NCBI RefSeq assembly: GCF_036588685.1
Contig: NC_086374.1
Location: 71,176,001-71,240,000 of the forward strand
Direction: 5' to 3'
From: Mytilus trossulus
Taxonomy: Eukaryota
Length of the DNA stretch: 64,000 bases
Each line of letters starts with the position of its first letter. The first letter of the stretch is position 1. The position numbers and the translations under genes were made by a program. The notes under the pieces were generated by a model that did no database searches, was not told the origin of the DNA, and was given only the letters and a program-made list of their open reading frames with translations. Shown one piece after another: positions 197 to 49,058 of the stretch.

Positions 197-1889
197 TTAT
201 GTTATGTTATACAAAAAGGCTGCACCACTCAAGTTAGTAACTAAAAGTAAGTTTCTGCTTTGGTCAAAATGAATACCATAAGGCATTTTTATCCCATTGT
301 CTTCTCCTAACAATGGACGGGCATCCTTTCCATCTGGTGACAGTACGACGACACTGTTATTGCTATTGGATGCCACATATACATTATGATCTTTATCAAT
401 TGTGACTCCACGGATCCCTTTAAAAATTGATTTGTCTTTTAATTCCCAAACTGTCTGTCCGGTAACTGTAGAGCATATGACGGTACTTGAATGTTGGTCT
501 GTACGGTATATCTTGTCTTTTGATGATGTAACATAGTTCCAGTAATGGTCGCTATCGACTTTAACTACTGTAATGGCGGTATTTTCATCAGTAACGTCTA
601 CTGTTTTAATACCACTCCCCCTTTCATAATATACTAATCTTCCATTAATATTTGTAATGCCGTAGCACGGTTTTGATGTTTTGACCTTGTTAGTAATCTT
701 TTTATTTTCGATATTGACTATTTCTATATGATGCGGTGGCCAATTATGGGTAACAGCGACAGTCTTTTCATCAATACAAGTAACTTCTATAGGCTGCTGT
801 GATATAGGTATTTCACTATCAAATAATCCGTTCTCATTGTAGATTAGAAGACGCTTATTTCCATTATCTACGAAGACCATTTTCCCAGAAGGCATGATAG
901 TGCAGCCACTAATTCCATTTATATATTCCCCTTCTGGTATCTCAATTTTTTTCAATAAAGTAGGATTGATGTAATTTATTGTTTTTGGTGTCGTCAGAAC
1001 TACCTGTTGAGCTTGTTTGTCCCTATCCATCGTCAATTTAATGGTTGGTGTGTTTGTTATAACTGATATCTCTCCAATCCTTTTCATGGCGAGTATGTCA
1101 GACAATCTGTCATCAATTCTGCATAGTAGGTTTATTTGTTGTAAGCTTCCATTTTCTATCAAAGACTGAATAAACATCTCTTCTTTTTGGATCTCGGCCT
1201 CAACGATTTTACCTCCAAAAAATGATTGGAGGTCAGTTGCAAAACTTTTCGTAGCGGAAACATTCTCCTGTAGCTCATCTACTGATTTCTCATGATCGGA
1301 AACCATAGACAGTAGTCTTTCTATTTGTGATTGGTTTGTTCCGCTGCTTGGATATCCTGCTGTATTTCATTTTCAACCTTGTTTAGGTGCTTGTTTATTT
1401 TCTCTCGTATCTCATGTATGTCTGTCTGGAAACTTTGCCGCTGTTGCTGAATGTTCCCTAAATTCTTTGTTCTGTCTTCAACTATTTTGTTCATGTTCCT
1501 CTTCATATCTTTTAAACTTTGTTCCATAATGTCAAATGATGCTGAAGTGTTCGACGTTTTGACAATATCTTCAATTGCTGTCAAATCACATGTTTTGTGA
1601 TTTCTTGTAATACAAAGCGGACAACAGAGTTTTCATGCCGGGAACAGTAGTGCTGATATTTTCTCTCATGGTCTGAGCAGTATTGGTTTATGCTTGCAAT
1701 AGTGTGTGGTAGTTTTTGATAATTATTCATTGAAATAACTTCATGATTTCTTGAGGCTTTGGAGGCACGATGGTGTTTTTCGCATGATGAACATAACCCC
1801 TCATCGCATTCAGAACACCAGAAGATTGCCTCTCTCACTGTGTGCTGGGTTTCACACACACCACAGATTGTTTCAGTGACTGATTCCAT
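197..1889 (-). pseudogene. RING-less TRIM-like B-box/coiled-coil/NHL beta-propeller gene, copy A, frameshifted
   Basis: Three consecutive ORFs (1581-1913, 1321-1584, 197-1306) rebuild one paralog: CGVC-x10-CSEC-x4-CSSC..H B-box, coiled coil, NHL-like blades. There is a 1-bp loss in a T-run at 1630-1633 and a 4-bp loss near 1335. Restoring 5 bp gives 1698 nt, the length of copy A'. ATG at 1889 follows TTTTCAG|TTTTTA. Confidence 0.88.
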
Positions 1890-3467
1890 TAAAAACTGAA
1901 AAGCAAATTTCAAAATTCTGTAATTGAATTCAAAACTAGCTTACCATAAGAACAAACCTTTTCTATTATCATACTTAAAAAAATGTATATAAATTTTAGA
2001 TAGAGAATAGTTAAATTCGAACTGCTTCCTTCTCTTGTAAAATATACCACTTTTACCTTTATTATAATCATTAAGTTTGCTCATTTGTTAGTTTCATTTA
2101 GTGATATTTTTGTAGATAATTTTTCAATTAGAGTATGTGTATTAGTGATCCTTTCACTATTAATAGTATTTACATATCTTTAGTCTTTTTGAAAAAAATT
2201 GGCAAATTATAAAAAATAACAAATCCTGAATAAAGGGTTATCATATCAGTTGAAAAAGAGGCCGTGTTGACAAAATTGTAGATCTTTATTTGCTGATCTT
2301 TATCGCTTCAAAATTTCTATCAATCTACTTTTGGGTGGGATGGGGGAAAACAAAAGGTCGAAAAACTTAAAAAAAACTTAAATTTATTATTTATCGGAAA
2401 TTATCCTTTTAATTTTGTCGATGACAGTTGCAGTCGTGTTGTCTGATTTGAAGATCGCATTGCGCTGAACAATTTTGTCGTCTTGTCTTTTGATATATAT
2501 GTTTTATCAACAACAACAAAACGTTAAAATTGGTGAGAATCATCTTACAAGGTCCATTACTCCTCTCCGGGTTACATGATTGATTTCGAACAGGTCAACA
2601 AGGTTTTACGTTGCTACTTTTTTCGTATATTGTTGCATACCATCTTCAAATATTTTACATAAAATATTATTTAATTGATAAAATATTTCATGCAAAATAA
2701 CTCCTATAGTTACAGTTTCACTCATTTCCAATTACTTGTAGATAATGAGTTTTAACAATTTGTTGCATTAATTGTGGTTTCTGCACAAAAACTTATAAAC
2801 TTAAGTAAAAAACATTCTGAAGTACATACAAAAAGACAATTTTAGCAATGTGACTAATATTTACATCCTTTTATAATCACCATTTTTTATATGTTATTAT
2901 TAAGGATAATAACTCCTTTTAGGGTTTACTGACGCTTTTATCAGTAACATATAGACTTTCTCTACCTGTTTATCATTTCAAATCCTGTCAGGTTTTCTGT
3001 AATTGCTTTTTATTAGTTTAAATATTATGATGAAGCCTAAACCTGCATTTTATTCATAGGTTCAATTTTTAGTAACAGCAATTATGTTTGTTCAACTTCT
3101 CTTTGGGACTTTCCGGTAAAGTTTGGTAAAACTAAGCTGCAGTTTTAGAGAAGGATTTTTTTCTGTAAAATTTACTATAATGAATACAAACGACGGACAC
3201 AAAACAATGACAAAAGCTAAGATAGAGGTATTCTAACAGGAAAAGTAAAAAACATTCATTAAGGTGTCTTCAACTTTTCTGTTTTAAACACAAACTTGTC
3301 TATACATACATTTCATGGTGTTAAACACGGTCTTACTTCCTTAAAGTTTAAGAGCAACTATAATTCGTTCCGTTTTATCCATCGAACAAAGTCCCCCTAT
3401 TTATTTACCTGAAAGCAATACCATTATTTATGTACCTCAATATAAGTTATGTAAAATGTCTTTAAAC

Positions 3468-3610
3468 AATAAAAAATAAAAACACAAACATACTGAACTG
3501 CGAGGAAGATTCAAAAAGGAAAGTCCAAAATCAGAAGGCAAAATCAAAAGTCCAAACACATCAAACGAATGGATAACAATTGTCATATTCCTGACTTGGT
3601 ACAGGCATTG
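3468..3610 (-). repeat. Short interspersed repeat inserted in unit A only (related copy 38525-38722 on plus)
   Basis: The empty site in A' is tgtctttaat|caataagtga (~42770). Confidence 0.7.
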
Positions 3611-3839
3611 ATTAATAAGTGATCGAAAAATTCGGAACGTATAGCAGCCACAACAGCAAAAGCTGAAATATGTAAACAATTCTCAAATGGATTAATATAT
3701 GTGTATCAAGGTGTTTACATAGCAGGTCCCAACTGTTACAATGAATTTGAAAGTACTTTTGATTTACTCATCAATTCCGTAATAAGAGTCATTTGCTTAC
3801 ACATCGATTTGTAGATATATAAAAAATTTCAGTGATTTT

Positions 3840-4010
3840 ACCTTAAAGTATTGCTGTTATCGGGTTAAAATCTATATCAAAACTTTCCATGTCTTCTTAC
3901 GTCTTACGAGGTCAATATATCAACCCGGATGTATAAAGGCGATAAACACGTAATACAGATATAGTCTTCATACAAAACAACGCAGCATATGAACTACAAA
4001 TTGACTGCTG
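3840..4010 (-). promoter_or_regulatory. Candidate non-coding exon 1 / core promoter of copy A
   Basis: Block conserved upstream of all five genes. Minus-strand TAAG|GTAAA donor-like site (GT at 3841-3840) and ETS-like CCGGATGT at 3925-3932. Confidence 0.5.
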
Positions 4011-5816
4011 CTTTTATTTTTATATACAGCCTGTCCCTGTCGTGTGTTACACCGAACTCTCAAAATGAATCAAAAAATATGAAGACAAAGGAATATTGTA
4101 TACGTGTCCTGTCCCCTTTAATATTTGTTGTCGTGTGTTGTATTTTATTTCTGTTTTCTTTATCTATGTTTGGAGAATTTGATGTTGTTAACCTATCTTT
4201 TATTGTTTCTTTTGCAGACTCAGGACAATTTGTAGCATAAAAGAAAAACAAAGGATATTGCATATTGGATATTCATCCATGAATCAAAATTAGTATATAT
4301 GCAAATAAAAAAAAATATAAATTAAGCAAAGAAATACATGTAGCGCTTGAAGTGCTTCTCATAATCTCAAAATCACATGTCTTAATTATGTCTTTGGGGT
4401 TTGTTTATTTTGGGGTTGTTTTTTTTGTATTCTTTGTAAAAAAAAATGTATGTTACAGCTTCGTTGACTTTTCTCTAACTAAACCTTTTATCAATATTGC
4501 TATGCAATTTCACCTTCAACATTTCACAATTATCGATATGTACATATGCACAGCTTATTCTATAGTTTTCTATATTGTGTCATCTGTACTATTGTTTGTC
4601 TATTTGTCTTTTTCATATATAGCCATGCGTTGTCAGTTTATTTTCGATTAATGAGTTTGACTGTCCCTCTTGCATCTTTCGTCCCTCTTTTCTTAAACAG
4701 GGTATTATTATGATTAAGTTTTTTATTATTTATTTTTCTGTTTCTGTAAGAGCGTTAATATATTCCTCTATAACTGGTACTCCCAATTACACCCCTGAAT
4801 GCAATCAGTATGGAATATGTTTTTGTTACTTTTGAAAGTAAGGATTCCCATGTTGGACGGATTTGAACTGTTTTTATGAGAAATTAAATTTGAAAATCAC
4901 TATATTGTTATATCTTTATTATACCGAATAATTATTCTCGTTTATAATAATTTGAAAACACGAAATGACAAATATAATTATCATACTTAAGATATAATTT
5001 TTATTATCTGTGTGCTCTTAATATTTGTATAAGAAACCAAATAAATTTAAAATTGAAAGAATTTCCTTATAACACATTACAAAAGAAAAGCGCAATATAC
5101 CAATAAGATTTCAAAATTTATAAGTGGAAAGTCAGCTGACAACGCCATAGCAATAAAAACGAAAAACTTCCAAAGACCTACAATATTACTACCCTTTAAA
5201 ACGGGTAAAGTATGTTATAACGATAGAGCTGCACTAATCAACAAAATAAACAAGGCCGTATCAGATCAAAATAATCAGGTCATCTAACTTCCCTCAACCT
5301 AACAAACAAAAATTCAAAAAATCACCTAATCTAATTTATATAATAATATCTACTAAAACATCTCATGATCCTCTCAGTCGTTTTCAAAAATAGCGTCGGA
5401 CTAGAGGAAAGGTCTGATTGTCATTTTCAGCTGATGATTACCCAGGAGTGATTGTCAGTGAACATGGTGAAGCTGTAAGATGAAAAACAAAGATATTTTA
5501 TTTGATAGAGGTATAAATACATTCATTGCTATCATTGTTGTTCATGTAAAAATGTCCCAGCTTTATGACAGTGAGAGCTCCTAAGTTTATCTTTTATTCC
5601 ACATCTTAGCCAACACGTTATTACAAGACATGCTTTTACGCATTCCATTTGAGATTAATTATATAGAGGTATGATGTGGCTAATGAAAAACAAAAATGGG
5701 AAACTAAACTGAATATATTGAGTTAAATATGACGAAACAAAGGCAAAATTATAGTTTAATAATTTGCCATTATGCAAGTTTTTCAACATATATAGATAAA
5801 TATATCTAAATATACA

Positions 5817-6150
5817 TAAACATTGACTAGAGGTATAGGGAAGGGTTGAGATCTCAAAAATCATGTTTAACCCCGCCGCAATTGTCCACCTGTCATAAGG
5901 CAGGAGCCTCTGGCCTTAATTGGTCTGGTATCATTTTTAATTTTAGTTTCTTGTGTATAATTCGGAGTTTATTATGAAGTCCATTATCACTGAACTAGTG
6001 TGCATACCTGTTTAGCATGTTCAGAGGACGGCTGAAAGACGCCTCCGGGTGCGGGAGTTTCTCGCCCGTTGGTGGACTTCGGCTGTTGTATTTCTATGGT
6101 CGGGTTGTTGTCGCTTTGACACATTCCCCATTTCCATTCTCAATTTTATA
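5817..6150 (+). repeat. Short interspersed repeat ending cattccccatttccattctcaattttat (duplicate 46097-46408)
   Basis: Shares the tttaa.cccgc.gcaa..tgcacctgtc.taagtcagga core with the family above. Confidence 0.7.
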
Positions 6151-7136
6151 AACGGTCACATTATATATCTATAGATGAATCATCTTGATAAAGTATTCAA
6201 ATTTTACGAAAATCTCCTCAAAACATAAACTTTTAAGATTAGCAATTTATTAATGTCCGATGCATCATTTTCTCACAAATTGAATAGAAATCAAGTTCAG
6301 ATGTCAAACTGTTGGTAAAATGTAGAGAAATAAATCAATGCATCAGTTATTCGATTTAATACAGATTTTGATTCAAGGATGGATTCAATTTTGTTACTTT
6401 TAATTCAATAATTTTGAATGTTAGTTTTGACTACATTTTTTATGAATAAATATTAAATTAATTAATTTGGTCGAACTACATTACATGTATAAGGTAATTA
6501 AAGGTAAATTAACAAAATAAACACAGAATAAAAACGTTTTCAACGTGGATTTAAAAGCTGTCACCATAGGTGTTATCTGAATACCCATCACCTTAAACAT
6601 GTATAATTCTCAATTTTAATTATGTAGATTATCCTATGCACACTTTGAAATTTCCATAATCGTGTTGGCAAATATATCAATTTATTCATAATAAGGTTAA
6701 AAACACATATAAATAATAGAAAAACCAAAAACTATCATGTCTCATGTTTGTTCGAAACGTGATGCAACATTTCAAACTAGTTGTCAGTAAATGCGAGTAC
6801 TGTGAAATTTGTACTAAGTGTCTTTCTGGTGTGGTGCTGTAAAAGAACATGACTACGTCATCTCTTTGTTTTTTATTATTTATATACCTATTTGTATCCA
6901 TCTGATAAGTTTAGCTCTTTTCAACTGATTTTTATAGTTCGTTGGTATATATGTTGTACTTTTTTTCCACTGTCCAAGGTTTGGCAGAAAGTGGGGATTC
7001 CGGTAACATTTTAGTAAATTTGTAATTCTTTTATAATGTAAAACATTGTCCCTTTTTTACATTTATAATTTCCTTGAAATGTTTACCACACATATTTTAA
7101 ATATTATCAACAAGAAAAGTTAAAACACAAATGTCA

Positions 7137-8822
7137 TTAAATGTTATACAAAAAGGCTGTTCCACAAAGGTGGTTACTAACAAGTAGAATTTTTCTTCCT
7201 TGGTCAAAATAGACACCAACAGGCTCATCAACCCCGTCTTCTTTTCCTAACAATTCACGGGCGTGCCTTCCGTCTGGTGAAAGTCCGACGACATTGTTTC
7301 TCCCCTTAGATGCCACATACAAATTGGAATCGTTGTCAATTGCTATTCCACGAATTATTTTCAAAATTGGTTCGTTTTTTTCCCAAACCTTCTGTCCTGT
7401 GACTGTGTAGCATGTGACGGTATCTGTGACGGGGTTTGTATGGTAAATTTTGTCTTTTGCAGCTGTAACATAGTTCCAATGCTGCTTGACATCGACTTTA
7501 ACTACTGTAGTGATAGTACTTTCATGATTGACGTCTACTGTTAAAATACCACTTCCTGTTTCATAATATATTAATTTTCCATTGTTATTTGTAATGCCGT
7601 AGCAGACATTTGATGTTTTAATCCTTTTAACAATCGTTTTATTGGCGATGTTGATTATTTCTATATAATAAATCCATTCATGATGCGTTACAGCGACGGT
7701 ATTTTCATCAATACATGTAACATCTACAGGCCTACGTGCTACAGGTATTTCAAAATCAATTAATCCGTTTTCATTGTGGATTACAAGACGATTATTGTCA
7801 TTATCTACAAACACCATTTTCCCAGTAGGCATGACAGTGCAGCCCGTGATTCCACTTGTTATCCCCTCTTTTACTATCTCAAATAAAGTAGGATTGATGT
7901 CATTGATTGTTTTTGATATCGTTTGTACCATTTGTTGAGCTTGTTTGTCTCTAGTCATCGTCAAGGTGATCGTCGGTGGATTTGCTATAATTGATATCTC
8001 TCCAAACTTGATGATTGAGAGTATGTCAGATATCTTGTCATCAATTATACATTGTAATTGTATTTGTTGTAGGCTTCCATCTTCTATTAAAGACTGCATA
8101 ATCATCTCTTTTCTTTGGATCTCTGCCTCTAACATTTTACCGCCAAGAACTGTTTGAAGGTCAGTTGCAAAACTTTTCGTCGCCAAAATATTCTTCTGAA
8201 GCTCATCTAATGACTTCTCATGGTCGTAAAATGTCGAAAGAAGTCTTTCTATTTGTGATTGGACTTTCTTTTCCGCTTCTCGGATATCCTGTTGTATTTC
8301 ATTTTCAAGTTTATCTAGGTGCTTGTTTATTTTATCACGTATCTTTTGTATATCTGTCTGGAATGTCTGTCGCTGTTGTTGAATTTTCTCCATATTCAGT
8401 TTCCGGTCTTCTACTATTCTTCCTATGTTTCCCTTCATATCTTGTAAACTTTGTTCCATAATGTCAAATAATGCTGAAGTCTTCGACGTTTTGACAATAT
8501 CATCAATTGCCACCAATTCACATGTTTTGTGATTTCTTGAAATACAAAGCGGACAACAGAGTTTTTCATGCTGGGAACAGTAGAGCTGATACCTTTTCTC
8601 ATGGTCTGAGCAATATTGGGTTATACTTGTTATGGATGACGGTATTTGTCGATAATCCTTTACTGAAGTTATTTCATGATTTTTTGAGGTTTTGGAAGCT
8701 TGATGGTGCTTTTCACATGATAAGCATAATCCTTCATCGCATTCAGGACACCAGATGACGGCTTCTTTCACCACGTATTGGGTTTCACATACACCACAAA
8801 ATGTTCCACTGGCTGAAGCCAT
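7137..8822 (-). CDS. RING-less TRIM-like protein (B-box1, B-box2, coiled coil, NHL-type beta-propeller), copy B, 561 aa
   Basis: Intact ORF. The likely start is MASASGTFCGVCETQ at 8822, 6 nt after acceptor TTTTGTTTTCAG. B-box2 is CSDH..YCSQHEKLCCPLC..NH..C. NHL-like blades include IRGIAIDNDSNLYVAS and PVGVYFDQ. Confidence 0.93.
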   Translation of the reverse strand: MASASGTFCGVCETQYVVKEAVIWCPECDEGLCLSCEKHHQASKTSKNHEITSVKDYRQIPSSITSITQYCSDHEKRYQLYCSQHEKLCCPLCISRNHKTCELVAIDDIVKTSKTSALFDIMEQSLQDMKGNIGRIVEDRKLNMEKIQQQRQTFQTDIQKIRDKINKHLDKLENEIQQDIREAEKKVQSQIERLLSTFYDHEKSLDELQKNILATKSFATDLQTVLGGKMLEAEIQRKEMIMQSLIEDGSLQQIQLQCIIDDKISDILSIIKFGEISIIANPPTITLTMTRDKQAQQMVQTISKTINDINPTLFEIVKEGITSGITGCTVMPTGKMVFVDNDNNRLVIHNENGLIDFEIPVARRPVDVTCIDENTVAVTHHEWIYYIEIINIANKTIVKRIKTSNVCYGITNNNGKLIYYETGSGILTVDVNHESTITTVVKVDVKQHWNYVTAAKDKIYHTNPVTDTVTCYTVTGQKVWEKNEPILKIIRGIAIDNDSNLYVASKGRNNVVGLSPDGRHARELLGKEDGVDEPVGVYFDQGRKILLVSNHLCGTAFLYNI

Positions 8823-11393
8823 TCTAATCTGAAAACAAAAAGTGAAGTAGTAACTGACTTCCGCAATGATTTTCATTATCATTGATTACTTTATATCTCA
8901 ATATTGGACAAAAGATATTCAAACAAAATGCTCTCAATAAGATGAATTACTCACCTGTTAAAATGATTAAACTTTGTCACTATTTTCATATTCATTGCAT
9001 TAGTTATGATTTTATAATTTGTGAGTATTTTCATAGTAATTGTGTACCAATTGTCATGTTACCGCTGATATATTATGCATAACTATTATGAGATAAATAT
9101 AAATATTATACAAGAAAAAAATGATTAATTGAAAAGACACATGACCGTACCAAAATCAATTTGGGCATGTTGACTCTTTAACGTTTTTTTTTTTTACTAT
9201 CTCATGTGCTTCAAAGTATTCTCAATATACTTTTTATTTACAAAAATGCAGAAGGAAAAACCCATATTTCGGTTTATAGTTACAGCCGCGTTGGTTTATT
9301 TGTAGATGTTAATGTGCTGAACACTTTGCTATATATTGGTTCTGTCTTTGTTGTAGTCTTTGCATCAAAAAGCGTAAAAATGTACAATCCAATTACTCCT
9401 GTAAAGTATCAGCTTACAATATCGATAATGTTGAATTATAAATTGAATATTTTATGCTGAACATCTTTGTTATAAATATTTTCTCTCCATGCAACATGGT
9501 AGGTGCAAAAAGCGTAGAATATTTTTTTTCAACCATGTTTATTTGTTTTAAGAATTTTTTTCGTAAATTTTTTTTGTTTTTTTTATTTATCAGTTTTTTC
9601 TATCGATTATGAGGTATTCCAAAATTGGAATAAAAGAACATCATTCAATGGCAATAACTTCTATTAGGTTTCCATCGACTATTTCGACCATTTGCCATAA
9701 TTATATATCGCATTTTGCAGAAGATTTTGTTCTTTCTAGGGCAATAATTCCTTAAATGAGTTAATTGATGATTTCATTTATGTTGACTTATTATTGGATT
9801 TCATAGAAAATTGTTGTTACTGACAGTTTCTTTCTACCATGGTTTCTACTCAATTGGATAAAAAAAGATTATAGTTCAATTTTTATGAGGTTTTTTTTTT
9901 TTATTTTTTTTTTTTTTTTTTGCTGAATTCTTGGACAGTTTTTGAGATGTAATGAAACAGGATTTAACCAAAATATTGTAATTTAGAAAAAAAAATATGC
10001 CTGTTCATTTGTCAAATCCCCGATTCATGTTAGGACTCCCTACGAAATATTTAGGTGCAATTAGATATCTTGTAGTCTTAGAGGAGAAGTGTATTTTTTT
10101 ACGATCACAATAGACAATGAAATCGGACAATGACGACAGACACAGAATGACCGACAGCGAGTGAAGGCAAACGTTGACATGCAGGTATTCTCGTAGAAAC
10201 ACAAAAACAACAGTCATATTTTATAAAATCTATTATACATCTACTATGCCCACGTCTTAACTTTTCCAGAACATAATTGTCTGTACATTAAACAAATTTG
10301 CACGTGTAAGCATGGTCCTATTTCCTTTAAAGAGTTGATGAATGTTAAATTCATTTCGCATTTTTGTAAGTTATAAACACAATAAACCATTGAGGAAAAT
10401 CTCCCTTTTAATATTAACAAGAAAGTAATATAGTTATTTGTAGTCCTGTAAATTATCTATGATATTTGTATTTATCATATACTTAGACTAAATAACATAT
10501 GATTTTACTGCATGGTAACAGCATTTAATTAACGTAAATTCCATATTTTTCAAATTGGTGCTTAGTGGGCTGATATGGAAAGTTTATCACATGCTTCGAG
10601 TGTTATCACATGCCTTTTCGTAACGTTATCGCATGGCATTCCTGTGAAACTCGGCAAATTCCGGAAAATACACCTCAATGCTACGTTTTCACTGAAAAAC
10701 ATTACAAAGTAGTGTACAAAACAATTATTTGGATACTGGAAAGTATATTTTGTAAAATAATTAAAAAAACAAGAACAAAACAAAATCAATCAAATTATTA
10801 AATAAATGCATTTTTTAAAAGTTTCAAACATAATTTAGAAAGTCACTTCTCAAAAAAGTTGATTTTTCCAAACAGTGTTCATTATGTATATTTTTGAATT
10901 ATCTTTTTGTCGTTTCGTCAAAATTTAAATGTTTTTCTTCTCTGTTGAGGCATACGATAGAAAGATTTCATATTAAACCTATTAAAGTGGTTCGACGTCC
11001 GTGAACTTTTCACTCTTTCAACTTCTATTTGGGAATCACGTAAAAGGATCAATATATGAATCTGTAATTTTTCTCCATCGTTGAAGCATATGCGGCTCTT
11101 GTGCTGATTTTGAACCTAGGGCTGATAATACATGCGATATGAAAAATATCATGTAATAATCTGATAATATTATCTGTGTAATATATGTTATGAATGACAT
11201 AACTAATTGCGACAATCAAATGGCAGGAGAAAAAATATGTAAACAACTAGCAAAATAATAATATGTTTTTATCAAGATTTTTCAATAGCTGGTCTTGTCA
11301 ATTAATTCAAAAGTAGTACTTATGATGTACTCTGAAATTCCAAAAAAAACCTTGAGTTATTAATACTTAGATATAAAAATAATAAGTACGTTT

Positions 11394-11530
11394 ACCTTAA
11401 TATATCATACAGAAATTGATATCCATCATTTTAGGTCTTATCACATGGTCAATAAATTTATCTGAATGTTTAAAGTCCACAAACATGTGACATATACTTT
11501 GTATAAACAAAAACGCAACAAATTTACGAA
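11394..11530 (-). promoter_or_regulatory. Candidate non-coding exon 1 / promoter of copy B (duplicate at 51631-51770 for B')
   Basis: TTTACCTTAA at 11391-11400 is homologous to the A and C donor. The downstream aaaaacgcaaca motif is conserved. The ETS-like site is altered to TCTGAATGT. Confidence 0.45.
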
Positions 11531-26750: not shown

Positions 26751-26769
26751 TTTATATGACCTTTTCTTA

Positions 26770-37060: not shown

Positions 37061-37959
37061 CTTAGATAGTTTTGCTTCTCTTACATTTCGTTTATATCGA
37101 AGTTTTCTTGAAAGAATGAATTAACATTTAGAGGGTGTACGTTAATGTCATAAAGATAGTCATATATATCATCGAAAATAAATGCATTTCAGGGTCAGAT
37201 TATTTCCCGACTTCTGCAACATACAATGTGCATGTATAAAAGCGTCTAGGAAAATGGTAAATAAATGAACATAGACTACAAAGATTAGCAAGGTTCATGA
37301 GACCACACAGACACATACTCATGTTTATGAATATGCTAATGAATATGCAAATGCTGATCACTAAAAATTCAGAAAAGATATATGTGTCTGGATAGTTAAT
37401 TGTTATGTCTTCATGGATCACAATCATGTTTTATACAAATATTGCCTCTGTCCACAGGTAAAGAGGAAAGTTTGACTCAAAGTTAGTGTATGTCTAAGAA
37501 CAAGGTTTTACATGCATGCCTATTATCTGTAGTCGATATTTTTTTCTCTGCCATTTTTAATTCTAATCAACCTTTTAAAAAATAGTTGCCATTGAACAAG
37601 TTTTGGCTGAACACTTTTTAACAGTTATATGTTGATGGAGAGATTAATTGCTGATATCATGTTTTGAGAAAAGCGTCCCGTGCTATTCTTGATTCCTTTG
37701 CTTGCACCTCGGTTATTACCCTTCTTCAGAAGAATTAAAAATTATCATTTTAAAACAAATCAGGGATTACTTATTTGAAATTTAAATCTAAATGATTGAT
37801 TATTAGATTTATTTACGTCTTGTGGAAAATGTAACATGTTTGTTCAGGGTGAGAAAAAGAAAGTTGAACAACTTCAAAAATAAGATATTATCATAAGAAA
37901 TTGTCCATGCACTTTAAGCCCATTATTGTTGAAAATGGTGGTGTTTACGTTGGAAGGAC

Positions 37960-38165
37960 AACTCGGTGCCACATGTGGTGTAGGATATGCTTAAGTTTCC
38001 GGAGAACCTGAGATAACCCCTAGTTTTTGGTGGGGTTCGTGTTGTTTATTGTTTCGTTTTCTATGTTGTGTCATGTGTTCTATTGTTTGTCTGTTTGTCT
38101 TCTTTCATTTTTAGCCAGGCGTTGTCAGATTATTTTCGATTTTGGGTTTGACTGTCCCTCTTTTA
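37960..38165 (+). mobile_element. Short 3'-UTR fragment of the same Penelope-like family (also 4550-4692, 43705-43811, and 12135-12330 on minus)
   Basis: Shared ggtgccacatgtgg..cctgagat..ccc..tttgactgtccct sequence. Confidence 0.7.
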
Positions 38166-39179
38166 TCCATGTCCCTGTAGCTTTCAATGTTTATCTCCTC
38201 AATTTCAAGCAGACATATCTCTTTTGTCCTAAATGACAATTATTTCAGGGTAAAGCAGCACCTTCTGATATAGTTTACTAAGAAGTTAAACAACATATCT
38301 TTAATGGCATATAAGAGAGAACTCGTTCCCAGAACGTCGGATGTATCAACGCATGTACTTCAGATCTGACAAACAGACAAAATGTCCCTGACATTTTACA
38401 TTTCCTGTAGTGCCCATTAGTTTCGGTCTCGGAAGTGGGATTCCATGTAATCGAAGTAGAATTAAAATTAAAAAAAAGTATGTGCGCTACTTCAATATAA
38501 TGGACTTTTGTTTATGCGGCTGTCTTTAAAATGAGAGATTAAGCTAGCTACAAAACCAGGTTTAATCCACCATTTTCTACATATCGAAAGTAAGGAATGA
38601 GACAGTTGTTTTCAATTCATGTTTAATTTGTTTAATGTGTTTGATCTTTCGATTTTGTTACTTGATACAGGAATTTCCCGTTTTTTCAATTTTTATGGAG
38701 TTTGGTATTTCTGTTATTTTTCTTTTTAAATTTTCTGTTGTTTTTAGCAAAATATAATGATGTCTAAATAATCTCTTTCAGATGGTTATGAAGTAATATT
38801 AAAACAAAATTTTGGAATCAATTGAATAACTCTAAATGTTGTATTAGAAATAAACAGCTAAATAACTTGTCTAATTAGGGAAACTAAGCATCTATGTCCA
38901 ATTTAATAGAAAACCACTATTGAACACTTTTAATCCAGTTTCATTCTTAATAGAATGATAGATGGAGAAGCGTTCAGCTTTTAAAAGTTAAAATTACTAG
39001 TATTGCATAGAGAGAAGGTGCGTTTCTTCTGTTGTTTTAGTATTTTAAAATTCACGCTATTTCAAAACCTACAAAGGTATCAGTGAAAACACATATATAT
39101 AATAATTGGGATCGAAGTGAACCGACCATATAAGCAGCATAATTAAAAAAAAGTCTTGTGTCTATCGTTATAAGATATA

Positions 39180-39320
39180 CTAGAACACACCCGTAATATC
39201 ACGGATCTGTGACTGAATTTAAGAATATAACTATGCGTAAGCCTTATCTTAGTATTGCATACTGAGTCATCTGTTAAAGTCATGCCGATTATAAGATGTA
39301 CAATTTTCTCTGCTTTTAAA
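39180..39320 (-). mobile_element. Helitron-like 3' terminus
   Basis: Minus strand reads ccgtgatattacgg (hairpin), gtgtgtt, then CTAG|T. The 5' extent is unknown. Confidence 0.55.
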
Positions 39321-39431
39321 CAGAGTAAACAGATGTTCTTAATATTCTGCACTTTTTACATCCATTGTTTTGTAAAAGTCTGCACACTGTTTCAAACAGC
39401 TTGATTTTTGAATCTTCATTCTTTAAAAAGT

Positions 39432-41129
39432 TCACGTAATTTTATACAAAAAGGCTGTACCACGCGAGTTAGAAATTAGAAGAATATTTCTGTTTTGGTC
39501 AAAATGAATACAATAAGGCTCTTCAATTTTATGTTCTCCTCCTAACAGTTCACGGGCGTACTTTCCATCTGGTGAAATTACAACGATACGGTTATTCTCC
39601 CTGGAAGCCACATATACATTGGAATCGTTATCAATAGTTACTCCACGAGGCTCCTTCAATATTGATTCGTCTTTGTATTCCCAAACCTTCTGTCCTGTGA
39701 TTGTGTAGCATGTGACGGTATCTGAATAATAGTTTGCATGGTATATCTTGTCTTTTAATGTTGCGACATAGTTCCAATGATTCTCGTCATCGATCTTAAC
39801 TACTGTATTGATAGTACTTTCATTATTGACATCTACTGTTTGAATACCACTTCCTGTTTCATAATATACTAATTTTCCATTTCTATTCGTGATGCCGTAC
39901 CACTGTCCGGACGTTTTAATCATTTTAACAATCTTTTTATTTCTGATGTTAAAGATTACTATATGAGAAGGATTTTCACTACGGGTGACAGCAACGGTAT
40001 TTTCATCAATATATGTAGCATCAACCGTTAAAGCAGATACAGGCATTTCACAATCGAATAATCCGTTTTCATTGAAGATTATTAGACTATCAGTGTTATC
40101 ATCTACCAAAACTATTTCCCCAGTAGGCATGATACTGCAGCCCGTGATTATATTTCTTCTTCCTAGGTTTGGAATCTTATTTTTTTTCAAAAAAGTAGGA
40201 TTGATGTCATTGATTGATTTTGATATTGTCGATATCATCTTTTGAGCTTGCTTGTCACTATTCATCGTCAAAGTAAGAGTTGGTGGGTTTGCTTTAATGG
40301 ATAAATCTCCAATCTTTGACATGGAGAGTATGGCAGACAGCTTGTCATCAATTCTACATTGTAGGTTTATTTGTTGTAAGCTTCCATCATCTATTAAAGA
40401 CTGCACAATTTTTTATTCATTTTGGATCTCGGCCTCAAACATTTTGCAATCCAAAAAAGTTTGAAGGTCAGTTGCAAAACTTTTCGTCGCGAAAATATTG
40501 TATTGTATCTCATCTATTGCCTTACCGTGGTCGGAAAATTTAGAAAGAAGTCTTTTGATTTGTGATTGGACTTTCTGTTCCGCTGCTTGAATATCCTGTT
40601 GTAATCCATTTTCAAGTTTATCTAGGTGCTTGTTTATTTTCTTTCGTATCTCTTTTATTTCTGTCTGGAATGTTTGTCGCTGTTGCTGAATTTTCCTCAA
40701 ATTTTGTGTTCTGTCATCAACTATTTTAGCTATGTTGCTTTTCATGTCTTTTAAACTTTGTTCCATTATGTCAAATAATGCTGAAGTCTTCGACATTTTG
40801 ACAATATCATCAATTGCCATTAAATCACATGTTTTGTGATTTCTTGTTATACAAAGCGGACAACAGAGTTTTTCGTGCTGGGAACAGAAGTGCTGATATT
40901 TTTTTTCATGGTCTGAGCAGTATTGGTTTATACTTGCAATAGTGTGTGGTAGTTTTTGATAATTGTTCATTGAAATAACTTCATGATTTCTTGAGGCTTT
41001 GGAGGCACGATGGTGTTTTTCGCATGATGAACATAACCCTTCGTCGCATTCAGAACACCAGAAGCTAGCCCCTCTCACTGTGTGCTGTGTTTCACACACA
41101 CCACAAATTGTTCCACTAGTTGCAGCCAT
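39432..41129 (-). pseudogene. RING-less TRIM-like gene, copy A', with one in-frame TAA after codon 238
   Basis: ORFs 40413-41129 and 39432-40406 are in the same frame. EAEIQNE*KIVQSLI aligns with EAEIQKEEIFMQSLI of copy C, i.e. GAA>TAA at 40413-40415. The frame is otherwise open. Confidence 0.88.
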
Positions 41130-42992
41130 TTCAAACTGAAAACAAATTTCAAAATGTTATAATTGAATTCAAAACAAAGCTATTCATATGTTTTTTTTGT
41201 TGTTTTTAGATAGGGAATAGTTAGATTTGAGCTGCTTCCTTCCCTGATAAAATATACCAGTTTGACCTTTATTATAATCATTTTAGTTTGCTTATATGTG
41301 AGTTTCAATTGGTGATTTTTTTAGATCATGTTTCAATTAGAGTATATGTATTATTGATCATCTCACTATTTTTAGTTTATACATATCTTATTAAAAAATA
41401 ACAAATCCTGAATTAAGGGTGACAATTCATATCATGTAAATGAGACCATAGATATAGGAAGATGTGGTGTGAGTGCCAATGAGACAACTCTCCATCCAAA
41501 TAACAATTTAAAAATTAAACCATTATAGGTTAAAGTACGGCCTTCAACATGTTGACTAAATTGTACATCTTACTTTGTTGATCTCTATCGCTTCAAATTC
41601 TCTCACGATCTACTTTAGGAAATTGTTTTAAAAGGTTAAACTAACATTGTGCTGAACAATTTTGTCGTCTTGTCTATTATTATTTATGTTTTACTAAAAT
41701 ATAATATACTCCTTTCGTTAAATGATTGGTTTAGAACAGTTCAACTTACTAGAAGGTCTTACGTTGCTACTTTTTTCGTACATGTATATTGTTTCATACT
41801 ATTTAAGTGTTACACATAAAATATTATTTAATGGATATAAAAGAACTCAGGGAAAATAACTTCTGTTGGGGGTCAGTTTACAATTTCGGTCATTTTTTAT
41901 TATTTGTAGATAATGCATTCATAATTTCTCGCATTAATCTTGGTTTCTGCACACAAAAAACGCATAAATTTTAGTAAAACACATTTCTGAAGTACATACA
42001 AATCATTTGACAATCTTAGAACTGATGACTAATGTGTACATCTTTTTATAATCAACATTTTTTATATGATATTAATTGGCTTTCCGGGAAAATAACTTCT
42101 ATAAGACGATTTTTTTTCTTCAAATATAAAAAAGAAGATGTGGTATGATTGCCAATGAGACAACTATCCACATAAGACCAAAATGACACAGACATTAACA
42201 ACTATAGGTCACCGTACGGCCATCAAAAATTCGAAATCAGTAAGATATAGACTTTCTCGACCTGTTTATCATTTAAAATACTGTCAGGTTTTCTCTGTCT
42301 GCTTTTCATTAGTTCTTGATATATGATTTTATTCATAGGTGGGGTTTTTTAGCACTAGCATTTATTTTTGTTCAACTTCTCTTTTGAACTTTCATGTAAA
42401 GTTTGGTAAAATTATGTTTTAGAGAAGATTTTTTTTTGTAATATTTACGATGACAAAGATATACGATGGACGCTAAACGATGACAAAAGCTAACATGCAA
42501 GTAAGCTAAAAGGAAAAGTAAAAATCACAAACAATATCAATTAAAAAAACATCTACTAGGTTTCTGTAACTTTTCTGTTTACACCAACTTGTCTTTACAT
42601 ACATTTCATGGTATAAACACGGTCTTACTTCCCTAAATTTTAAGATAAATTAAAATGCGTTCCATATTATTCATCGAACAAATAATTAATTGATGTCCCC
42701 CTTTTTATTTACTTGAAAGCAATATCAGTATTTATGTACCTCAATAAAAGTTATGGAATTTGTCTTTAATCAATAAGTGACAAAAAGCTCGGAACGTATA
42801 TCAGCCCCAACACAGCAAAAGCTGAAATACGTAAACCGTTCTCAAATAGATTAATAAATGTGTATCAAGGTGTTTCCATAGCAGGTCATGACAACGATTT
42901 CGAAAGTACTTTTGATTTACAAATCAATTCCGTATTGAGAGTCATTTGCTAACACATCAACTTGTAGATATATAACAATTATCAGTGATTTT

Positions 42993-43160
42993 ACCTTACA
43001 ATATTGATGTCATTAGGTTAAAATTTATATCAAAACATTCCATGTCTTCTTACAAGGTCACTATATCAACCCGGATGTATAAAGGCGACAAACACGTAAT
43101 ACAGGTATACTCTATCAACAAAACAACGCAACACATAAACTACAAATTGACTGCTGCTTT
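42993..43160 (-). promoter_or_regulatory. Candidate non-coding exon 1 / promoter of copy A'
   Basis: Donor-like TAAG|GTAAAA (GT at 42994-42993) and CCGGATGT at 43071-43078. Confidence 0.5.
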
Positions 43161-43884
43161 CATTTTTTTATACAGTCTGTCCCTGTCATGTAAGAGTTTA
43201 TGTATGTTACACCGAACTTTCAAAATGAAACCAAAAAAGTTAAGACAAAAAAATTGTAAACGTGTCCTGTCCCCTTTAATATTGTTGTCGTGTGATGTAT
43301 TTTATTTCTGTTTTCTTAATCTATGTTTGGAGAATTTATGTTGTTTATAACATATCTTTTAATGTTTTTTTATAGACTCTGGACAATTTGAAAGAAAAAC
43401 AAAGGATATTGCATATTGGATATTCATCCATGAATCAAAATTAGTATATAATTATGTAAATAAAAAAAAATATAAAAAGCGATGGAATAGCGCTTGAAGT
43501 GCTTCTCATATACTTAAATCACATGTCTGAACTATGTCTTATAATCCTGGTACCTTTGATAACTATTTGGGGATGGTTTTTTTGTTGTTTTTGTATTTTT
43601 TGTTTTATATGTTACAGCATCATTGACCACTCAAACACATCCTTTTATCAATATTGCTATGCAATATCACCTTCAACATTTGACAATTATCGATATGTGC
43701 ATTCACAGTATTGTTTGTCTGTTTGTCTTTTTCATATTTAGCCATGCGTTGTCAGTTTATTTTCGATTTATGAGTTTGACTGTCCCTCTGGTATCTTTCG
43801 TCCCTCTTTTCTAAAACAGGGTATTAGTATAATTAAGGTTTTGAGCTTTGATTTTTCTATTTCTGTAAGAGCGTTAATACATCA

Positions 43885-45110
43885 CTTAAAAATCTTTTAA
43901 GCATATTATACTAAATGGAAGTTGAAAGTGAACTTGAATAAAACGAAAGTTGTAACTTTTTGCAAGAGACCATTCAAACATAACCAAATTTTAAAACTTT
44001 TTGGCAAAAATCAAGATATAGAAGATTCTTATTCTTGTTTAGGAGTAATTTTAAGTTACAATGGTTCTTTTGTTAAAGCCAAGAAAATATTAGTCCAGCA
44101 AGCGCAAAAAGCATAATTCAGTTTATACAAAAAAACACGCAATATAACTACCTGTTGATTTACAGATTAGCTTATTCGATACTCTCATACTTTTCATCCT
44201 GACTTATGGTGCGAGGTGTGGGCATTTGAAAACATTCAGATGATAGAAAAAAATCACCTACAATTTTTCAAAAAATATACTTACGATAAGAACCACTTCT
44301 CCTACTCCTAATTTCATGTCTTATGGAGAACTTGACAGAACTCCAATTGAGGCAGCTATTAACTTAAAAATTGTCTGCTTTTGAAATAAACTTATTGTCA
44401 ATCAAAACAAATTAAGCAGTGTTTTATATAGAGTAATGTATAATCTAGTCTTCAATCAGGTAATACTAGTTTTAAGTGGATGAATCATTTAAAGTCTAGT
44501 TTTGATAACACGGGACTCAGCTATGTATGGACTCAGCAATTTCCAGTTAATTCATTCCAATTAAAAGTTACTGTAAAACAAAGGCTCGTAGATCGGTTCA
44601 TCCAAAAATGGTATAGCCAAATAGAAAATTCATCAAGAGGAAAGTTTTATGGTCGATTTAAATTAGAATTTAATCTGGAAAACTACCTTCTAAAATTATT
44701 TCCAAGAGAAAGACAATTATTAAAAACAAAAACAAATATTATTTTTTTTGAAATACCCATAGAAACCGGAAGGTGGACAAACATTCCAAAAGAAGAAAGA
44801 ATATGCCACTTATGTCATGTAGGAATTGGCACTAAATTTTCTGACCGTCGTAAAAATACGAAACAAACATACATTATTCCTATTTACTTTACTAGATATC
44901 CATGTATCAAAAAATGATAGGCTTATTGACACTGAGTAATGAAAAAGTAATAAGAACAAAATAACTGTATATTTTTTTATGTTTGTTTTTTTTTTCTTTG
45001 TTATACCCATCATTGTTTTGTTTTGTTTGTCTGTATGTAAATATTGTATTCATCGTGTTACACGTATGTATTGTGTCTGAGAGATCAAATAAAAGTTGAG
45101 AGTTGAAGTC
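43885..45110 (+). mobile_element. Degenerate 5'-truncated LINE, absent at the homologous site (~4760-4770) of the first copy
   Basis: KWKLKVNLNKTKVV, YGELD and IPIETGRW..EERICHLC motifs with frameshifts. Ends AATAAAAGTTGAGAGTTGAAGT. Confidence 0.85.
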
Positions 45111-47373
45111 TTAACTGGGACTCCCAATCACATCCCAGAATGCAATCAATATTGAATATGTTTTTGTTAATTTTAAAAGTAATGATTACCATGTTGAACG
45201 GATTTGTATTGTATTATGAGAAATTAAATTTGATAATCAATATATTGTTTTATAATAATTTGAAAACACAAAAAGACATATATAATTATCATACTTAAGA
45301 TAGAGTTTTTATTATCTGTGTGCTCTAAATATTTGTATAAGAAACCAAATAAATTTGAAATTGAAAAAAAAAGTTATTTCTTTATCCAGACACATTACAA
45401 AAGAAAAGCGCAATATATCAATAAGATTTCAAAATTTATAAGTCGAAATTCAGCTGGTAACACCATAGCAAAGAAAACGAAAAACTTCCAAAGACATTCA
45501 CTATTATATATAATTACTACCATTTAAAACGAGGGATACATGTTATTAAGATAGAGCTGCACTTATCAATAAAATGAACAAGGCCGTAGCAGATCCAAAA
45601 TAATCAGGTCATCTACATTGTAACTTCCCTCAACCTATCAAACAAAAATCCAGAAAATCACCTAATCCAATTGATATTATAATATCTACTATAACATCTC
45701 ATGATCCTCTCAGTCGTTTTCAAAAATAGCGTCGGACTAGAGGAAAGGTCTGGTTGTCATTTTCAGTTGATGATTACCTCGGAGTGATTGTCAGTGAAGC
45801 TGTCAGATGAATAACAAAGAAATTTTAATCAATAGAGGTATAAATACATTCATTGCTATCATTGTTATCATGTAGACATGTCTCAGCTTTATGACAGTGA
45901 GAGCTGCTAAGGTTTTTTTATTACATATTACACATCACGTTATTACAAGCCATGCTTTTTCGCATTCCATTTGAGATTGATAGAGGTTTGATGTGGCTCC
46001 TGAAAAACAAAAAAGGGAAACTTGACTTTATATATTGAGTTATATATGACGAAACAGAAGCCAAATTATAGCTAAATATATCTAAATATACATAAACATT
46101 GGCTAGAGGTATAGGGAACGGTTGAGATCTCAAAAATTATGTTTAACCCCGCCGCAATTTTGCACCTGTCATAAGTCAGGAGCCTCTGGTCTTAATTTAG
46201 TTTCTTGTGTATAATTCGGAGTTAAGTATGACGTCCATTATCACTGAACTAGTATGCATATTTGTTTAGGAGACAGCTGAAGGACGCCTACGGGTGCGGG
46301 AGTTTCTCGCTACATTGAAGACCCGTTGGTGGCCTTCGGCTGTTGTCTTTTCTGTGGTCGGGTTGTTGTCGCTTTGACACATTCCCCATTTCCATTCTCA
46401 ATTTTATAAACGGTCACATTATATATCAATAGATGAATCATCTCGATAAAGTATTTCAATTTTACGGAAATCTCCACAAAAATAAACTTTAAAGATAAGC
46501 AATTTATTAATGTCCGATGCATCATTTCTCACAAATTGAATAGAAATCAAGTTTAGATGTCAAACTGTTGGTAAAATGTAGAGAAATAAATCAATGCATT
46601 AGTTTTTCGATTTATTACAGATTTGAATTAAAGGATGAATTCAATTTAGTTATTTCTGAAGAATTTTGAATGTTAGTTATGACTACATTTTTTATGATTA
46701 AATATTAAATTAATTAATTTGGTCGAACTACATTACATGTATAAGGTTATTAAAGATAAATTAACAAAATGAACACAGAACAAAAACTTTGTCAACGTGG
46801 ATTAAAAAGCTGTCACCATAGGTGTTATCTGAATACCCATTACCTTAAACATGTATAATTCTCAATTTTAATTATGTAGATTATCCTATAGTCTGCACAC
46901 TTTGAAATTTCCATATTCGTGTTAGCAAATATATCAATTTATTCATAATAAGGTTAAAAACACATATAAATTATAGAAAAAACAAAAACTATCATGTCTC
47001 ATATTTGTTCAAAACGTGATGCAACAACATTTTAAACTAGTTGTCAGTAACTGCGAGTACTGTGAAATTTGTACTTTGTGGTGCTGTAAAAGAACATCTC
47101 TTTGTTTTTTATTATTTATATACTTTTTTGTATCCATCTGACGAGTTTAGCTCTTTTCAACTGATTTTTATAGTTCGTTGGTATATATGTTGTACTTTTT
47201 TACCACTGTCCAAGGTTTGCCAGAAAGTGGGGATTCCGGTAACATTTTAGTAAATTTGTAATTCTTTTATAATATAAAACATTGTCCCTTTTTTACATTT
47301 ATAATTTTCTTGAAATGTTAACAATAAATATTTCTATATTTTCAAAACAAGAAAAGTTAAAACACAAATGTCA

Positions 47374-49058
47374 TTAAATGTTATACAAAAAGGCTGTTCC
47401 ACAAAGGTGGTTACTAACAAGTAGAATTTTTCTTCCTTGGTCAAAATAGACACCAACAGGCTTATCAACCCCGTCTTCTTTTCCTAACAATTCACGGGCG
47501 TGCCTTCCGTCTGGTGAAAGTCCGACGACATTGTTTTTCCCCTTAGATGCCACATACAAATTGGAATCGTTGTCAATTGCTATTCCACGAATTATTTTCA
47601 AAATTGGTTCGTTTTTTCCCAAACCTTCTGTCCTGTGACTGTGTAGCATGTGACGGTATCTGTGACGGGGTTTGTATGGTAAATTTTGTCTTTTGCAGCT
47701 GTAACATAGTTCCAATGCTGCTTGTCATCGACTTTAACTACTGTAGTGATAGAACTTTCATGATTGACGTCTACTGTTAAAATACCACTTCCTGTTTCAT
47801 AATATATTAATTTTCCATTGTTATTTGTAATGCCGTAGCAGACATTTGATGTTTTAATCCTTTTAACAATCGTTTTATTGGCGATGTTGATTATTTCTAT
47901 ATAATAAATCCATTCATGATGGGTTACAGCGACGGTATTTTCAGCAATACATGTAACATCTACAGGCCTACGTGCTACAGGTATTTCAAAATCAATTAGT
48001 CCGTTTTCATTGTGGATTACAAGACGATTATTGTCATTATCTACAAACACCATTTGCCCAGTAGGCATGACAGTGCAGCCCGTGATTCCACTTGTTATCC
48101 CCCCTTTTACTATCTCAAATAAAGTAGGATTGATGTCATTGATTGTTTTTGATATCGTTTGTACCATTTGTTGAGCTTGTTTGTCTCTAGTCATCGTCAA
48201 GGTGATCGTCGGTGGATTTGCTAAAATTGATATCTCTCCAAACTTGGTGATTGAGAGTATGTCAGATATCTTGTCATCAATTATACATTGTAATTTTATT
48301 TGTTGTAGGCTTCCATCTTCTATTAAAGACTGCATAATCATCTCTTTTCTTTGGATCTCTGCCTCTAACATTTTACCGCCAAGAAATGTTTGAAGGTCAG
48401 TTGCAAAACTTTTCGTCGCCAAAATATTCTTCTGAAGCTCATCTAATGACTTCTCATGGTCGTAAAATGTCGAAAGAAGTCTTTCTATTTGTGATTGGAC
48501 TTTCTTTTCCGCTGCTTGGATATCCTGTTGTATTTCATTTTCCAGTTTATCTAGGTGCTTGTTTATTTTATCACGTATCTTTTGTATATCTGTCTGGAAT
48601 GTCTGTCGCTGTTGTTGAATTTTCTCCATATTCAGTTTCCGGTCTTCTACTATTCTTCCTATGTTTCCCTTCATATCTTGTAAACTTTGTTCCATAATGT
48701 CAAATAATGCTGAAGTCTTCGACTTTTTGACAATATCATCAATTGCCACCAATTCACATGTTTTGTGATTTCTTGAAATACAAAGCGGACAACAGAGTTT
48801 TTCATGCTGGGAACAGTATAGCTGATACCTTTTCTCATGGTCTGAGCAATATTGGGTTATACTTGTTATGGATGACGGTATTTGTCGATAATCCTTCACT
48901 GAAGTTATTTCATGAATTTTTGAGGCTTTGGAAGCTTGGTGGTGCTTTTCACATGATAAGCATAATCCTTTATCGCATTCAGGACACCAGATGACGGCTT
49001 CTTTCACCACGTATTGGGTTTCACACACACCACAAAATGTTCCACTGGCTGAAGCCAT
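47374..49058 (-). pseudogene. RING-less TRIM-like gene, copy B', 1-bp frameshift near the 3' end (may be a homopolymer error)
   Basis: Near-identical to copy B. T6 at 47612-47617 versus T7 at 7375-7381 shifts the frame after VWEK. The rest of the C-terminus is in ORF 47374-47715. Confidence 0.85.

Follow-up and report, generated by a model that had tools for sequence, protein, structure and literature searches.

Results

Organization of the array

A 64-kb window of the 1.3-Gb genome assembly of the mussel Mytilus trossulus (G000:C2:71176001-71240000; positions below are those of the window unless stated otherwise) was found to contain five single-exon copies of one gene family on the minus strand, named here A, B, C, A' and B'. 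Each copy encodes a protein that starts with B-box1 and B-box2, continues with a helix of about 130 residues and a flexible linker, and ends with a six-bladed NHL propeller. The positions of the copies, domains and selected codons are collected in Table 1. A first-pass annotation of the same DNA had described A, B, C and A' as a tandem array of RING-less receptors with a constant oligomerising stalk and one hypervariable propeller face. The conserved motifs on which it relied (GC..MP.G, TVA.T, YGIT, YYE.GSGI, WNYV, RG..ID, SPDG, FDQ) and all eight quoted sets of loop variants were recovered in translated minus-strand open reading frames (ORFs). Overlooked there were the fifth copy, B', the lesions, and the origin of the array by duplication of an A-B-C unit.

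A and A' had been treated as working genes, which had to be revised since both are disabled by lesions. In copy A, 1 nt is missing from an A-run at about 1630-1633, in B-box2, and 4 nt at about 1334, in the coiled coil; the sole open part of this copy is a C-terminal ORF of 369 aa (197-1306). Apart from one in-frame stop codon, A' is full length. In B', a 1-nt deletion in the A-run 47612-47617 leads to a premature stop at 47598-47600. As assembled, three of the five window copies are disabled, and two of the four copies of the compared set A/B/C/A'. The proteins of the intact copies B and C are identical to NCBI/UniRef models of M. trossulus, seen on one contig, which is the genome itself.

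Table 1. Coordinates of the gene copies, of the domains and positively selected codons of copy B, and of the duplicated segment
Feature	Position	Strand	Remarks
Copy A	197..1889	minus	disabled; 2 deletions
Copy B	7137..8822	minus	intact single-exon coding sequence, 561 aa
Copy C	30935..32641	minus	intact single-exon coding sequence, 568 aa
Copy A'	39432..41129	minus	one in-frame TAA, 40413-40415 (codon 239); full length otherwise
Copy B'	47374..49058	minus	disabled; 98.5% nucleotide identity to B
Duplicate C'	G000:C2:71241687-71243375		just past the window end; 98% identical to C
B-box1 of B	8673..8801	minus	residues 8-50; PF22586, ANCHR-like B-box
B-box2 of B	8508..8615	minus	residues 70-105; PF00643
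Long helix of B	8082..8471	minus	residues 118-247; predicted antiparallel homodimer coiled coil
L2 linker of B	7890-8081	minus	residues 248-311; low confidence
Six-bladed NHL propeller of B	7140..7889	minus	residues 312-561
Positively selected loop codons of B	codons 319, 324, 342, 364, 383, 406, 464, 465, 489, 506, 507, 533, 552, 553		D-A and B-C loops
Positively selected strand-end codons of B	codons 317, 326, 491, 535		top ends of strands
Tandem segmental duplication of the A-B-C unit	93..63636	.	paired stretches 93-12136 with 39333-52376 and 18764-28947 with 52393-63240

Domain composition and predicted structure

The Pfam E-values of the B-boxes ranged from 3e-7 to 3e-6 with PF22586 and from 4e-10 to 5e-5 with PF00643. 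The ligand residues of B-box1 (C9, C12, C25, C28, C33, C36, H49) and of B-box2 (C71, H74, C82, H85, C90, C93, H98, C101) were invariant in 34 relatives. A 34-sequence profile of the N-terminal half matched TRIM28 (8e-11), TRIM25, MID1 and TRIM63 among the PDB chains.

The absence of a RING, claimed by the first-pass annotation, was borne out by several searches. No RING family was detected by Pfam in any copy or in four relatives, one of them 837 aa long, and the RING consensus expressions (C3HC4/C3H2C3) gave no open pattern in the six frames of the 64 kb. The NCBI models of B and C begin at B-box1, and in all of the 79 paralog matches described below the open frame was too short for a RING within that exon. 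Compared with the strict definition of TRIM/RBCC (RING, B-box, coiled-coil) proteins, B-box1 and B-box2 are present and the N-terminal RING is missing; the protein therefore cannot be an E3 ligase by itself. No signal peptide or membrane segment was found, referring to a presumably cytosolic protein.

The full-length AlphaFold model consisted of the two B-boxes, a single helix (118-247), a low-confidence linker (248-303) and the propeller. Structure prediction is in line with the proposed oligomerising stalk. With residues 62-300 an antiparallel homodimer was predicted with an ipSAE (interaction prediction score from aligned errors) of 0.72, compared with 0.00 for the best of three controls. 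Of 30 proteins solved as one-chain pairs, 21 attained the mark used for a homodimer, compared with none of 23 solved as single chains. The contacts agreed between the runs by at least 90%, and the partner had a predicted local distance difference test score (pLDDT) of at least 81. An antiparallel arrangement was evident from contacts such as 165-169 and 154-180, and residues 251-291 packed on the middle of the rod. The prediction supports a TRIM-like antiparallel dimer without proving it, and the model may reproduce solved TRIM coiled coils.

Residues 301-561 were modelled by AlphaFold with a pLDDT of 91.8 and a predicted template-modelling score (pTM) of 0.90. The 24 strands formed six four-stranded blades, the ring being closed by an N-terminal strand. 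In the Foldseek search against PDB, Brat was found first (4zlr, 1q7f; E 6e-15, template-modelling (TM) score 0.78), followed by the NHL domains of Thin, NHL-2, TRIM2, Mei-P26, TRIM71/Lin41 and TRIM3; the TM scores of these top hits, Brat included, were 0.75-0.82. A 34-sequence profile searched against the PDB propellers gave TRIM3 (1.5e-11) and Brat (1.4e-10), and also TRIM2, Thin, TRIM71 and NHL-2; the profile alignments to the PDB chains were out of blade register. With single sequences, the Pfam NHL match was marginal (16.7-21 bits, one repeat). The C-terminal six-bladed NHL propeller by which TRIM-NHL proteins of class VII, or subfamily C, are recognized is thus present and, judged by the domain order and the lack of a RING, the architecture is that of Brat.

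Variability is concentrated on one propeller face

According to Loedige et al. 2014 (PMC4015489), the top surface of NHL propellers is formed by the b-c and d-a loops, and the opposite, bottom surface by the a-b and c-d loops. With loop labels assigned from the predicted strands, all eight loops listed in the first-pass annotation turned out to be D-A or B-C loops of the top face, in agreement with its claim. The mean pairwise amino-acid identity among A, B, C and A' was 0.35 in the top loops (62 columns), compared with 0.74 in the bottom loops, 0.69 in the strands and 0.73 in the N-terminal part. Columns in which all four copies differed amounted to 16 of 62 in the top loops, 2 of 47 in the bottom loops and 1 of 139 in the strands (permutation test of the top loops against the rest of the propeller, p=5e-5).

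The same distribution was observed with 21 paralogs from the genome. The mean column entropy was 2.21 bits in the top loops, 1.33 in the bottom loops and 1.28 in the strands, and the differences of the top loops from the bottom loops (p=1.5e-7) and from the strands (p=5e-13) were significant in the Mann-Whitney test. The top loops were more variable than the neighbouring bottom loops everywhere except in blade 3, which has a conserved top loop, B3-C3 (TGS), and a variable bottom loop, C3-D3. Strong conservation was seen in the B-boxes, helix and blade cores and in the bottom loops (A-B, C-D).

Positive selection in the top loops

Nine intact close paralogs, among which the number of synonymous substitutions per site (dS) was 0.3-0.8 and hence informative and unsaturated, were used for the selection tests. 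The maximum-likelihood dN/dS ratios (omega) on a common tree, taken from the per-partition IQ-TREE logs, were 0.29 for the N-terminal half, 0.51 for the strands, 0.97 for the top loops and 0.27 for the bottom loops. Site models were fitted with our own GY94/F3x4 pruning likelihood, which matched the M0 log-likelihood of IQ-TREE to two decimals. M1a-like and M2a-like mixtures were compared, the branch lengths of M0 being kept apart from one global scale factor.

With the whole gene of the nine intact copies, the likelihood-ratio test (LRT) statistic of M2a versus M1a was 27.5 (p=1e-6); it was 61 with 13 sequences, four disabled copies being added. The propeller on its own tree gave an LRT of 51.0 (p=8e-12), with 9% of the codons at an omega of about 3.5. 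The trees of blades 1-3 and 4-6, built separately, gave 26.7 and 27.7, respectively. In contrast, the LRT of the N-terminal 300 codons was 0.00 and no positively selected class was obtained. Both the constant scaffold and the selection beyond relaxation that had been proposed for the family are therefore upheld by the site models.

In the propeller run, sites with a posterior above 0.8 were found at 12 of 63 top-loop, 0 of 47 bottom-loop and 3 of 143 strand positions. The three strand sites, 317, 326 and 535, lie at the top end, being last in a D strand or second in an A strand. Positive selection is thus confined to the top face (D-A loops, B-C loops and upper strand ends) and is seen in all six blades. 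Two positions recur from blade to blade: the last residue of the D-A loop (324, 364, 406, 489, 533) and residues 1-3 of the B-C loop (342, 383, 464/465, 506/507, 552/553). Since they occupy equivalent places in the blades, the selected positions should ring the axis on the top face.

The result was robust to several changes in the procedure. A FUBAR/FEL-like grid with synonymous-rate variation showed the same enrichment in the top loops over the strands and bottom loops taken together (Fisher p=6e-6). In a parametric bootstrap, the maximum LRT of 60 M1a simulations on the same tree was 6.85. When the columns up to two positions from a gap were masked and one near-identical duplicate was dropped, the LRT was 34.7 and the sites were distributed as 8 of 45 top and 0 of 43 bottom positions. 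The pattern was weakly replicated in two unrelated clades on another chromosome. In the clade of six sequences (LRT 8.0, p=0.019) both sites lay in top loops and the N-terminal LRT was 0; in the clade of four sequences (LRT 7.2, p=0.027) the sites comprised 10 of 56 top, 1 of 46 bottom and 2 of 139 strand positions. By analogy with immune-recognition families, positive selection is focused here on the presumed ligand-binding surface.

Duplication, segment exchange and gene turnover

The identity along the segmental duplication is mosaic, being about 79% around A/A', 93% around B/B' and 96-98% ahead of C/C'. The dS values are also mosaic. Between A and A', dS was 0.24 in the B-boxes, 0.33 in the linker and 0.47-0.49 in the coiled coil and propeller; the pair of family loci L006/L011 gave 0.17 versus 0.52, and the pair L008/L009 the reversed pattern. 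Mosaic identity together with mosaic dS indicates that part of the unit later underwent unequal crossing-over or gene conversion. Between B and B', 17 codons show nonsynonymous and 7 synonymous differences, with an omega of about 1 in the coiled coil and propeller, which fits B' being dead. The dN/dS of C/C' was 0.15, so that the young intact duplicates are still constrained.

A loose first pass of the paralog search gave 2584 candidates. At least 79 full-length single-ORF paralogs were finally found in the genome, in arrays on several chromosomes, 78 of the 79 with E-values of 7e-97 or lower. No relative of B with more than 70% identity was present in the searched proteins of M. edulis, M. 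galloprovincialis, M. coruscus and M. californianus. In the protein tree (MAFFT and FastTree), the window copies reach their congeners by long branches alone, whereas other clusters, and paralogs on other chromosomes, have orthologs on short branches. The missing close relatives of B/B' may reflect presence/absence variation or very fast divergence at the locus. The number of paralogs, the segmental duplication, the three disabled copies and the lack of close orthologs of B together characterize a lineage-specific tandem expansion with birth and death of genes.

Further copies of the family are located downstream on the same chromosome. One of them, locus L013 (G000:C2:71249455-71251314, about 9.5-11.3 kb past the window end), matches the family in two pieces about 140 nt apart. 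An acceptor-like TTTTCAG is kept 5-8 nt upstream of the ATG in all five window copies (e.g. about 1893-1899 and 8829-8835); this conserved sequence suggests a non-coding first exon and an intron in the 5' untranslated region. Directly upstream of the start region of copy C, a 62-bp unit is present in two tandem copies (32713-32834).

The two duplication units differ by a 6.6-kb stretch (12136-18764), which is present in the first unit only and is gone between 52376 and 52393 of the second. The stretch carries an intact reverse-transcriptase ORF of 626 aa on the minus strand (14492-16372; PF00078, E 2e-34) and is probably a young non-LTR (long terminal repeat) retrotransposon inserted after the duplication. 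Both units contain a pair of 21-bp satellite arrays in opposite orientation about 1.3 kb apart: 18562-19043 and 20361-21322 in the first, 52393-52709 and 54071-55029 in the second, with about 23, 45, 14 and 45 copies, respectively. The pairs resemble a foldback-type element or inverted satellite blocks. Two ORFs of 170 and 190 aa (52233-52745 and 53518-54090) are translated satellite only.

Discussion

The variability of the top face in the M. trossulus array is real and statistically strong, and the structural and evolutionary picture of a constant stalk, one hypervariable face and no RING holds. The term receptor is used for these proteins as a hypothesis. In our opinion, the locus is probably best explained as a birth-and-death array of Brat-type RING-less genes with positive selection on the propeller top face, providing a diversified cytosolic binding repertoire against non-self. 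The fold, the domain order and the lack of a RING, as well as the segmental duplication, segment exchange and frequent gene death, were established for the locus. The mode of action can be outlined as follows. The proteins would reside in the cytosol and form antiparallel dimers through the helix, as TRIM proteins do, each dimer presenting two identical variable propellers. Each paralog would bind a different ligand by its top face, and the diversity would be kept by an arms race with non-self, most plausibly with viral or transposon-derived protein or nucleic acid. Lacking a RING, the proteins might work by sequestration or assembly; alternatively, a partner that binds the constant parts might mediate their action.

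In canonical TRIM-NHL proteins the top face is electropositive and serves to bind RNA (PMC4015489, PMC5908797). In a crude count of charged residues in 25 paralogs, the net charge of the top loops ranged from -8 to +5 with a median of about -2. This argues against a generic RNA-binding face, while proteins or other ligands remain candidates. The proposal that these propellers bind RNA as Brat and LIN-41 do was not supported by this count, and a reading of the family as pure RNA binders was down-weighted.

A quite unlikely explanation of the variability is that constraint has been relaxed and nothing else: the top loops would drift neutrally after duplication around a fixed core and fixed tight turns, the proteins would have no receptor-like function, and many copies would be on the way to pseudogenes. 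The near-neutral omega of the top-loop class, the disabled state of three of the five window copies and the omega of about 1 between B and B' fit such drift, and it is general knowledge that the A-B and C-D turns are structurally constrained in any NHL protein. However, a model with omega of at most 1 was rejected, the propeller LRT far exceeding the simulated maximum. Both propeller halves and the gap-masked set rejected it separately, with a class at an omega of about 3.5; the signal remains with the intact copies alone, and purifying selection prevails overall in the young intact pair C/C'. That the test itself is at fault, through misaligned indel-rich loops and a single-tree assumption broken by gene conversion, is highly improbable. 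Several top loops do have indels of 1-3 residues, and the mosaic dS along gene pairs and the mosaic identity along the duplication do refer to segment exchange. Nevertheless, removal of the gap-flanking columns did not change the site distribution, the separate trees of blades 1-3 and 4-6 each gave an LRT of about 27, and the N-terminal half, equally exposed to conversion, gave 0.00. Recombination cannot yield selected sites in the top loops with none in the bottom loops.

It is also unlikely, although less so, that the paralogs are diversified endogenous regulators, each reading different RNAs or proteins of the mussel itself, e.g. in the germline or in larval development, so that the divergence would reflect subfunctionalisation and not defence. 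The nearest solved structures all belong to developmental RNA-binding TRIM-NHL proteins, the NHL top face of these relatives is an RNA platform whose specificity differs (PMC4015489, PMC5908797), and Brat is likewise without a RING and is listed as TRIM-like (PMC3503706). Against this, housekeeping regulators normally have 1:1 orthologs, and B lacks a close relative in the four congeneric proteomes. Copies die frequently, and the at least 79 full-length members are arranged in tandem arrays. By the charge count the top loops are not electropositive. Positive selection recurs at the same positions in several clades, which is more in keeping with an arms race than with one episode of subfunctionalisation.

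Several points weigh against the repertoire of non-self binders that we favour. Errors of assembly could underlie the homopolymer frameshifts of A and B', and the support for B and C as genes consists of the exact NCBI models and the intact frames. With n=6 and n=4, the clades used for replication are small and gave p values of about 0.02-0.03. The tests used branch lengths fixed from M0 and naive empirical Bayes (NEB) posteriors, and NEB with nine sequences is indicative only. Segment exchange between paralogs can inflate the LRTs of site models, an effect that segment-wise trees lessen and do not remove; recombination cannot account for the face specificity or for the N-terminal null result. 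With a mean omega of about 1 in the top loops, much of the face may be merely unconstrained and a minority of sites selected. As the top loops are not electropositive by the crude charge count, the RNA-binding precedent of Brat and LIN-41 is not directly transferable.

Among the known systems, Brat and the TRIM-NHL proteins of subfamily C (TRIM2, TRIM3, TRIM32/Thin, TRIM71/LIN-41, Mei-P26, NHL-2) have the same order of two B-boxes, coiled coil and NHL, and their propellers are the best structural matches of the mussel propeller (Foldseek E 6e-15 to 6e-12). Brat, which Marin (PMC3503706) assigned to subfamily C as 'TRIM-like' for want of a RING, resembles the mussel proteins in having neither a RING nor a filamin domain. 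The functional surface of TRIM-NHL proteins is likewise the top face of D-A and B-C loops (PMC4015489). However, the sequence identity is just 13-17%. Single-copy, multi-exon genes encode the known proteins, which are conserved regulators of development with an electropositive RNA-binding top face, whereas the mussel family comprises at least 79 single-exon tandem paralogs with a top face that is not electropositive by the charge count and is under positive selection.

A parallel in evolutionary behaviour is found in TRIM5alpha and other fast-evolving TRIM proteins (primate TRIM5/22, fish finTRIM), where a constant scaffold of B-box and antiparallel coiled coil carries a B30.2/SPRY domain with positively selected surface loops. 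The TRIM5 and finTRIM genes form tandem lineage-specific clusters with pseudogenes. The C-terminal domains are analogous and not related, an NHL propeller standing in the place of SPRY, and the mussel proteins, being without a RING, have no intrinsic E3 activity; they are not known to have antiviral activity or a viral ligand. By the same analogy, the family would be placed with the germline-diversified immune recognition systems, such as TRIM5/finTRIM, the C1q domain-containing (C1qDC) proteins of bivalves and the expanded Toll-like receptors.

Database names of the relatives of the mussel family include TRIM71-like, TRIM2_3 and wech-like. As summarized in PMC9892467 (citing He 2015 and de Lorgeril 2020), many TRIM transcripts, mainly TRIM2/3-like, differ between disease-tolerant and disease-sensitive oysters. 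The oyster reports on TRIM2/3/45/56/71-like genes are lists at the level of annotation, linked here to the mussel family by name. A full-text search of the available literature yielded general papers on TRIM and TRIM-NHL proteins and oyster transcriptome reports, and no paper joining the RING-less architecture with face-specific positive selection on the NHL propeller. Two Mytilus pan-genome papers do not contain TRIM, NHL or B-box in the main text, and no TRIM gene is mentioned in an oyster paper on the expansion of immune genes. The family may be viewed, by analogy, as Brat-type TRIM-like genes used in the TRIM5/finTRIM manner, for which no description was found in the literature searched.

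Although they lack adaptive immunity, bivalves withstand many pathogens. Among their genes are hundreds of little-characterized 'TRIM-like' ones, which recur in the transcriptome lists of disease resistance. The present results turn what was a curiosity of annotation into a testable receptor hypothesis, in which a RING-less Brat-type family is recurrently selected at the NHL top face only. The residues named here should set the specificity, and a bivalent dimer is predicted. The locus is also a compact example of repertoire turnover by segmental duplication, segment exchange and gene death. NHL propellers may be recognition modules that evolve fast, a part played elsewhere by SPRY and LRR domains. 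A wider and more tentative idea, possible though less likely than not, is that mussels possess a very large germline repertoire of cytosolic NHL-propeller receptors, with at least dozens and perhaps hundreds of genes, in which a dimeric, Brat-like RING-less scaffold would carry a top face co-evolving with viruses, transposons or other intracellular parasites. If true, this repertoire would parallel TRIM5/SPRY or NLR/LRR recognition with propellers as its basis, and NHL would be a third kind of hypervariable recognition module in innate immunity.

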